A stretch of DNA of 64,000 nt from NCBI GenBank assembly GCA_000320545.1, contig ADNK01001088.1, forward strand, positions 124,001 through 188,000, read 5' to 3'. This stretch comes from Bigelowiella natans CCMP2755 (lineage: Eukaryota; Protista; Cercozoa). The notes under the pieces were generated by a model. That model did not search any database. It saw nothing but the letters and a program-made list of their open reading frames with translations, and was not told where the DNA came from. The position numbers were made by a program, and so were the translations under genes. Every line of letters begins with the position of its first letter. The stretch's first letter is position 1. Positions 10,301 through 10,966 of this stretch are shown one piece after another.

Positions 10301-10966
10301 TCAAACTTGACACCGCGTAATTCTAACGTCCGACGAAGACTCTCAGCCGACGTTTTCAGCTGATTTGTGCGGATGGTCAATGGCATGGGTTTGGTGTTGA
10401 CCTATAAAATGATAGATCAATTTCAGTGCGTGTCAGTCTTGCTGCTGCTGCAACAGCAGTAGGGATTGCAGCAAGGTTTATTTAATTACGTGGAGAAAGT
10501 CCACAAGCTTTTTGGGTCCGAGGAGATCGAGGAAGCCAGTTACAAGGGACTGCAGATACCCAAACCCCCTAGCCAATTCGCGAATGAGTTGCTCGTGCAA
10601 CTGTTCGCGCATCAATGGCTGCTGTCCATTTTCTTGGGATGTGATCCAGCACCGGGATCCAGTGAGATTGTGAAGAATTCGGTACGCATTTTTTACCGCC
10701 GTGATATTCGCGATCCTTTTAGATGATGGGCCTTGGTTCTTCGGGAAGACATCGCGAATGTTTGACCGGATACGAGATTTCAAGCGTTTTGGGGTATTGA
10801 ATTGGCGGACATTTTGGGCTCGGCGTGTCGAAGAGTCATGGCGATTACTGCCCTTGAGGAGAAGACTACGTTGATAATCCTCAGCGGCGACGGCGACGGA
10901 CGCGGCTGCAGGAAAGAGAATGATGAAGGCCCTCGTTGAAAACATGTTGGCCGGCCCAGCTGCCAT
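7373..10966 (-). CDS. NOP2-NIP7: NOP2 (25S/28S rRNA m5C methyltransferase, NSUN1-type) fused to a C-terminal NIP7 (pre-PUA+PUA) domain, with an N-terminal signal-like leader; 8 exons, about 784 aa
   Basis: Exons 10966-10490, 10401-10132, 10003-9615, 9421-9337, 9127-8771, 8524-8372, 8239-8032 and 7788-7373 are all GT-AG and total 2355 nt in frame. NOP2 motifs: [88 protein letters not shown]7 motifs: [49 protein letters not shown]. Confidence 0.9.
7817..7918. repeat. Compound microsatellite (CA)n(CT)n(TA)n in the last NOP2-NIP7 intron; representative of dozens of intronic SSRs in the window
   Basis: Directly visible. Similar compound SSRs occur at 22015-22066, 49177-49278 and 62118-62190, plus many (AGT)n, (CAT)n, (GAA)n and (GCT)n tracts. 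Confidence 0.95.

Follow-up and report, generated by a model that had tools for sequence, protein, structure and literature searches.

The nuclear genome of the chlorarachniophyte Bigelowiella natans contains a single-copy gene that encodes in one chain a signal-peptide-like leader, a NOP2 methyltransferase core and a NIP7 RNA-binding module. The gene lies on the minus strand of the window, by which we mean the whole analysed stretch of 64,000 nucleotides, and all positions below refer to it unless another contig is named. We infer that the leader likely carries the fusion protein by way of the ER to the inside of the complex plastid. Our preferred reading, held tentatively and with somewhat less than even confidence, is that the protein is a self-contained m5C enzyme of the periplastid compartment or nucleomorph, acting beside the products of the nucleomorph genes nop2 and nip7.

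The RNA-supported gene model has eight exons with 784 codons uninterrupted by a stop, and all introns are of the GT..AG type. The transcript data were Logan contigs from three runs belonging to three studies; these were assumed to derive from RNA, and introns are skipped in them. Splice joints were observed in the contigs at 10399/10488, 9999/10128, 9421/9615, 8523/8770 and 8238/8371, and loose contig ends in three runs connect 8031 with 7787, that is, exon 7 with exon 8. At intron 4 a repeat prevents a direct call of the joint, and the contig coordinates agree with an intron of 209 nt. A single contig, 2558 nt long and beginning at 11132, covers the leader as well as the NOP2 and NIP7 halves, its length being accounted for as 166 + 2355 + 37 nt. 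The mapping of reads and contigs covered positions 7935-12150, to the exclusion of the microsatellite intron and the last exon; three raw reads of run X20 were found at the locus. The junction of the two halves lies within exon 5 (8771..9127) and thus the fusion is genomic. Artefactual joining of neighbouring genes is excluded by this junction and by the contig that covers both halves.

The preliminary description, made from the sequence alone, had quoted an N-terminus that is the exact start of the minus-strand open reading frame 10966-10490, which is exon 1 of the fusion gene. There is an in-frame stop codon 5' of the ATG at 10966, and the RNA-type contig of run X5 is free of gaps from 11132 to 10488. 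The hydrophobic stretch is therefore an in-frame part of the transcript. The possibility considered at that stage, a translation start downstream of it, was not seen, nor was an extra upstream exon. The leader exon occurs once in the assembly.

The 5' untranslated region (10967..11132, minus strand) is at least 166 nt long, up to the end of the RNA-type contig at 11132, without a gap, and contains two upstream ATGs. The ATG at 11064 opens a hydrophobic, signal-like frame of 22 aa (11064-10996, minus strand), out of frame with the main gene, which may be a translation regulator or the relic of an earlier leader. The ATG at 10993 opens an in-frame ORF of 4 aa that terminates ahead of the main ATG. 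A strong 3' splice-site-like sequence at 10906 (minus strand) lies within the hydrophobic core and is unused in the spanning contig. A contig of one run terminates at 10903, and a minor isoform may skip the leader via the 10906 acceptor. The fusion gene is head-to-head with a gene for a protein with a signal peptide and a CS/p23 domain (11132-11570). Judged from where the RNA contigs end, the two genes share a promoter region of about 440 bp, and the neighbour is covered approximately four times deeper in the contigs.

The first 28 residues (10883..10966) form the signal-peptide-like segment, with a possible second start at Met8 (10945). Residues 13-28 are uncharged, the best 15-residue Kyte-Doolittle mean is 2.35, and the core is followed by AVA-A and VAA-E sites with small residues at -3/-1, in line with the (-3,-1) rule. 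Next comes a transit-peptide-like basic region, aa 29-84 (10715..10882), in which residues 29-83 comprise 9 R, 5 K, 8 S and 4 D/E, for a net charge of +10. Both parts of the leader are thus as the preliminary description had them, including the replacement of the acidic NOP2 N-terminus by a stretch of about 55 aa rich in R, K and S. Indeed, acidic residues make up 5% of residues 1-84 of the fusion versus 45% of residues 1-165 of the host NOP2, and at least 25% of the N-terminus in 42 of 61 long NOP2 homologues. The rest of exon 1, aa 85-159 (10490..10714), is a diverged NOP2 N-terminal helical region; BLAST aligns it to the host NOP2 from aa 120, and aa 85-100 were aligned by eye.

Signal-likeness was scored by a simple rule of our own. 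Among 1182 genomic frames that open with an ATG, 42 score this high (3.6%; genuine signal peptides and tracts of low complexity are part of this count), as do none of 107 N-termini of NOP2 homologues and none of 11,757 internal 35-mers. The hydropathy of the leader falls inside the range of four leader-bearing genes of the same genome for which we built provisional splice models: plastid AtpD (2.59), H2A (3.44), an H3 variant (2.60) and the CS-domain gene next to the fusion (2.19). In the 30 residues after the core there are 6 K/R and 3 D/E in the fusion, 3 and 0 in AtpD, and 2 and 2 in H2A. The charge of the transit-like extension thus combines stromal with periplastid traits. The core contains one proline and a short GCC/GTC repeat. 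The LRGG motif is absent from the leader end; only LLLKGS is seen, at aa 35-40. Taken together, this is moderate evidence, and the hydrophobic segment is probably a signal peptide. Work by Hirakawa from 2009 and 2010 reportedly associates a strongly positive net charge of the transit region with the stroma. The sorting rule is described as unclear in a proteomics paper (PMC3542566).

Two of the genes used for comparison deserve mention. The H2A, with a signal and a neutral transit-like leader (contig C496:5900-6600), is probably the published nucleomorph-targeted H2A and served here as a benchmark. The H3 variant (contig C2521, about 2100-3200, minus strand) combines a signal-like leader with a GKS tail rich in repeats. 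Even though h3 is a nucleomorph gene, this protein is a candidate for an H3 targeted to the nucleomorph or for a centromeric variant, and may be a parallel to the fusion.

The NOP2 half has the SAM-dependent core of the RsmB/NOP family. Exon 2 (10132..10401) encodes the ferredoxin-like domain, exon 3 (9615..10003; PF01189, E=1.4e-38) the SAM-binding motif I (aa 252-260) and the Pro-Cys motif IV (Cys336), and exon 4 (9337..9421) the Thr-Cys motif VI (Cys386). Both catalytic cysteines are retained. The best PDB matches are the NOP2 proteins of human, S. pombe, Chaetomium and yeast (230-267 bits), followed by archaeal proteins (163) and YebU (125), and this half is nearer to NOP2 than to RsmB, RsmF or NSUN2/4/5/6. 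The Atlas model (pTM 0.89) superimposes on NOP2 with a TM score of 0.92. No close prokaryotic or viral relative was found, and a bacterial, archaeal or viral source was rejected. The half is strongly diverged. It keeps 75 of the 88 near-invariant NOP2 residues (13 changed, versus 2 in the host NOP2), is 44% identical to the host NOP2, is missing a 4-residue insert common to 110 of 118 NOP2 homologues, and has a branch length of 3.97 versus 0.69 for the host protein. Another NSUN-family paralogue, at contig C2857:37320-40538, has DAECTHDGS at the Pro-Cys motif.

Exon 5 contains the end of the NOP2 core, a linker of approximately 40 aa and, from about 8854, the start of NIP7. The NIP7 half continues with the pre-PUA part in exon 6 (8372..8524; insertion of about 20 aa), the middle part in exon 7 (8032..8239; insertion of about 27 aa) and the PUA domain, again with insertions, and the stop codon in exon 8 (7373..7788). 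All NIP7 blocks are present and in order, identical to the host NIP7 at 54 of 182 aligned positions; the Smith-Waterman score is 104, and the maximum for shuffled sequences 61. PF03657 is above the cut-off. The insertions amount to about 100 aa, and the Pfam model for the pre-PUA part does not recognise this half. The sole PDB match of exon 8 is yeast Nip7, a weak one (E=0.62). The protein ends in RLLGGGV (7373-7400, minus strand), which loosely resembles a ubiquitin tail, probably by chance.

The linker had been proposed to carry a nuclear or nucleolar localisation signal. A basic NLS/NoLS-like cluster is present at aa 477-490 (8879..8920) and has 11 K/R in 14 residues. However, such clusters are common enough in ordinary NOP2 tails, 17 of 64 of which have at least 9 K/R in 14 residues. 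As judged from this comparison, the cluster is a remnant of the NOP2 C-terminal tail, and does not count as independent evidence.

We searched the whole assembly (91,405,885 bases, 3736 contigs) and found separate host copies of both genes, unfused and leaderless, as the preliminary description had expected. The canonical NOP2 (contigs C1883/C1884) has the long acidic N-terminus, and the canonical NIP7 (contig C1643) is 183 aa long. Thus the fusion is a second, fast-evolving copy; that it might be the only NOP2 of the genome is excluded.

The introns suggest where the NIP7 half came from. Two of its three introns, those at the 3' ends of exons 6 and 7, coincide in codon and phase with introns 2 and 4, respectively, of the host NIP7, in ungapped blocks. 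The probability of this coincidence is 0.0004, or 0.009 if a five-fold site bias is allowed. This suggests that the NIP7 half arose from the host gene by duplication at the DNA level, provided that the intron positions are not ancient ones common to green algae, and it lends no support to the green-algal origin that had been contemplated for this half. On the other hand, none of the four introns of the NOP2 half match host NOP2 introns in the core, which together with the 44% identity excludes a recent duplication of the host NOP2. In the AU test for the NOP2 half neither the green grouping (p=0.21) nor the host grouping (p=0.23) is rejected, and the trees give no firm placement because of the very long branch. 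The two halves may therefore differ in history.

The preliminary description was right that the host is a nucleomorph-bearing chlorarachniophyte. Not supported is the gap in the endosymbiont that it implied, a nucleomorph lacking nop2 or nip7 for which the fusion would make up. Both genes are in the nucleomorph gene lists of B. natans and Lotharella oceanica and are not counted among the 14 + 9 genes by which the two species differ (PMC4035089). They are not among the eight genes absent from the A. amoebiformis nucleomorph (PMC12730881), and cryptophyte nucleomorphs likewise retain both. Thus, according to the published annotation, the fusion fills no gap left by gene loss. The nucleomorph list also holds six clpP genes (PMC4035089), and no ClpP was found in the assembly, as expected with clpP on the nucleomorph and plastid genomes; the nucleomorph sequence is therefore not part of this assembly. 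The essential role of yeast Nop2 is independent of catalysis (PMC4510066), so that a division of labour would be possible between the nucleomorph Nop2 and the fusion. Ribosome maturation in nucleomorphs has been described as very little known (PMC6461891).

In the preferred reading, the leader would take the protein to the ER and on into the complex plastid, most likely to the periplastid compartment or nucleomorph. The tethered NIP7 half would dock on the NOP2 half in the way that the separate proteins do in their heterodimer, and the docked pair would be an RsmF-like SAM-dependent m5C enzyme acting on endosymbiont rRNA. Rather than replacing lost genes, it would supplement the nucleomorph nop2 and nip7 or specialise beside them, e.g. 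in catalysis or at another site. Fusion would let a leaderless duplicated host NIP7 share one leader, and would free the pair from divergent nucleomorph-encoded partners. This reading is favoured since each half is a eukaryotic pre-60S factor and the two have been retained together, along with the NOP2 helical region and the basic cluster, and since acidic residues follow the core as in H2A and unlike AtpD. However, a nucleomorph reported to have its own nop2 and nip7 has no obvious need for an imported copy, and the strongly positive transit-like region and the missing LRGG also count against this compartment. Import as such is weakened by the frequency of comparable scores among genomic frames, by the proline and the GCC/GTC repeat, and by our finding no orthologue with a conserved leader.

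The reported presence of both genes in the nucleomorph favours a somewhat unlikely alternative, that the bipartite leader leads to the stroma and the NOP2-NIP7 pair was retooled as a substitute for RsmF, RsmB or RlmI that methylates plastid 16S or 23S rRNA. The transit-like region is suitably basic, both halves are extremely diverged and the common NOP2 insert is lost. The domain order is that of RsmF, in which a methyltransferase is followed by a PUA-like module (PMC2836557). The structure of this module was predicted for a metagenomic RsmF from an alignment of 5 sequences (pLDDT 76.7); after RsmF itself, the best matches of the model were NIP7 structures (yeast Nip7, Foldseek E=1.8e-3; archaeal Nip7, Z 8.3, rmsd 3.4, 122 aligned). 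This similarity between NIP7 and RsmF is seen by structure only, being not significant by sequence. No NusB-type RsmB, RsmF or RlmI was found in the assembly, although intron-rich genes can escape such searches. We know of no m5C in chlorarachniophyte plastid rRNA. In plant plastid rRNA there are three m5C sites (PMC8394491). Against the stroma stand the retained NLS-like cluster and the acidic residues directly after the cleavage site as predicted, since the transit peptide of AtpD lacks such residues there. In its fuller form, which we consider rather doubtful, a nucleolar pair would have been duplicated, re-fused in the RsmF layout and sent to the stroma for 70S rRNA, in a lineage that has apparently lost RsmB, RsmF and RlmI.

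It is unlikely that the hydrophobic stretch fails to work as a signal and that the protein is a divergent paralogue of the host nucleolus, its basic N-terminus and linker serving as NLS/NoLS or in RNA binding. The host-like appearance of the NIP7 half and the 3.6% chance level of such a stretch would fit, as would the scope for leaderless products that is left by the acceptor at 10906 and by both upstream ATGs. The N-terminal domain of human p120 likewise has an NLS, a NoLS and an Arg-rich RNA-binding region (PMC4510066). However, the host has intact canonical copies of NOP2 and NIP7, the leader is kept in the spliced contig of run X5, and the acidic domain has been exchanged for an extension with the typical length of a bipartite leader and its hydrophobic part first. 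Still less probable is a mitochondrial rRNA methyltransferase or assembly factor of the NSUN4 kind, or a functionless, decaying duplicate. The N-terminal region is Arg-rich, and the long branch, the low-complexity insertions and our finding no orthologue could be taken as signs of decay, but the gene is expressed and spliced, its reading frame is unbroken and the catalytic motifs are kept. A mitochondrial presequence would not be expected to have an apolar core of 16 residues with Glu-Asp right behind it.

Database queries were single exons or two public protein records returned by the searches, which are partial pieces of the fusion gene with neither leader nor fusion. One, P0001, begins at residue 120, ends before the linker and has no NIP7; at introns 3 and 4 its splicing departs from the model that the RNA supports, adding residues. 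The other, P0121, is the last exon. Exon 1 searched against 1.84 billion representatives retrieved only P0001; exon 8 retrieved only itself. P0001 retrieved only ordinary NOP2 proteins (40-48%) in a search to which proteins longer than 607 aa are invisible. A metagenome scan for orthologues gave one generic NOP2 and prokaryotic enzymes. Such negative results are not proof that orthologues are absent. We found no description of a natural NOP2-NIP7 fusion in the literature searched, nor was there one among the matches listed, from which length limits would hide full-length kin.

The fusion is a Rosetta-stone link between the eukaryotic Nop2·Nip7 heterodimer and the single-chain bacterial RsmF, and offers biochemistry a one-gene form of the module. 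If it is imported into the nucleomorph, whose genome reportedly keeps both genes, annotators could no longer follow the usual rule of taking an orthologue encoded there as a sign against import, and the host would have a means of acting on the ribosomes of its endosymbiont. Were it stromal, a nucleolar enzyme would have been switched to 70S ribosomes.

Several known systems are comparable. Leader-bearing second copies of nuclear genes form a known class in B. natans; a host duplicate with a bipartite leader has a precedent in Nbp35 (PMC6105332), and import of nuclear-encoded proteins into the nucleomorph was verified with GFP (PMC5635652). The fusion is likewise a divergent housekeeping copy, with a putative signal and transit-like leader, but the nucleomorph reportedly keeps orthologues of both its halves, and its localisation is predicted. 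With NOP2/NSUN1, the methyltransferase of 25S/28S rRNA m5C2870/C4447, it shares the core fold and both catalytic cysteines, whereas the acidic N-terminal domain is gone, a signal-like leader is present, and the shortened tail is joined to NIP7. Homology is shared with NIP7 (UPF0113, pre-PUA and PUA), of which the fusion has an insertion-rich copy covalently joined to NOP2. In yeast Nop2 and Nip7 form an interdependent subcomplex (PMC3458554); this nucleolar pre-60S assembly has the same two partners, here in a single polypeptide. Finally, bacterial RsmF/YebU (16S m5C1407), as modelled, has the same layout of a methyltransferase and a NIP7-like two-part PUA module in one chain. However, both halves of the fusion are eukaryotic in sequence, PF17126 and PF13636 are unmatched, and there is no bacterial affinity. 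Thus the RsmF layout was formed anew.
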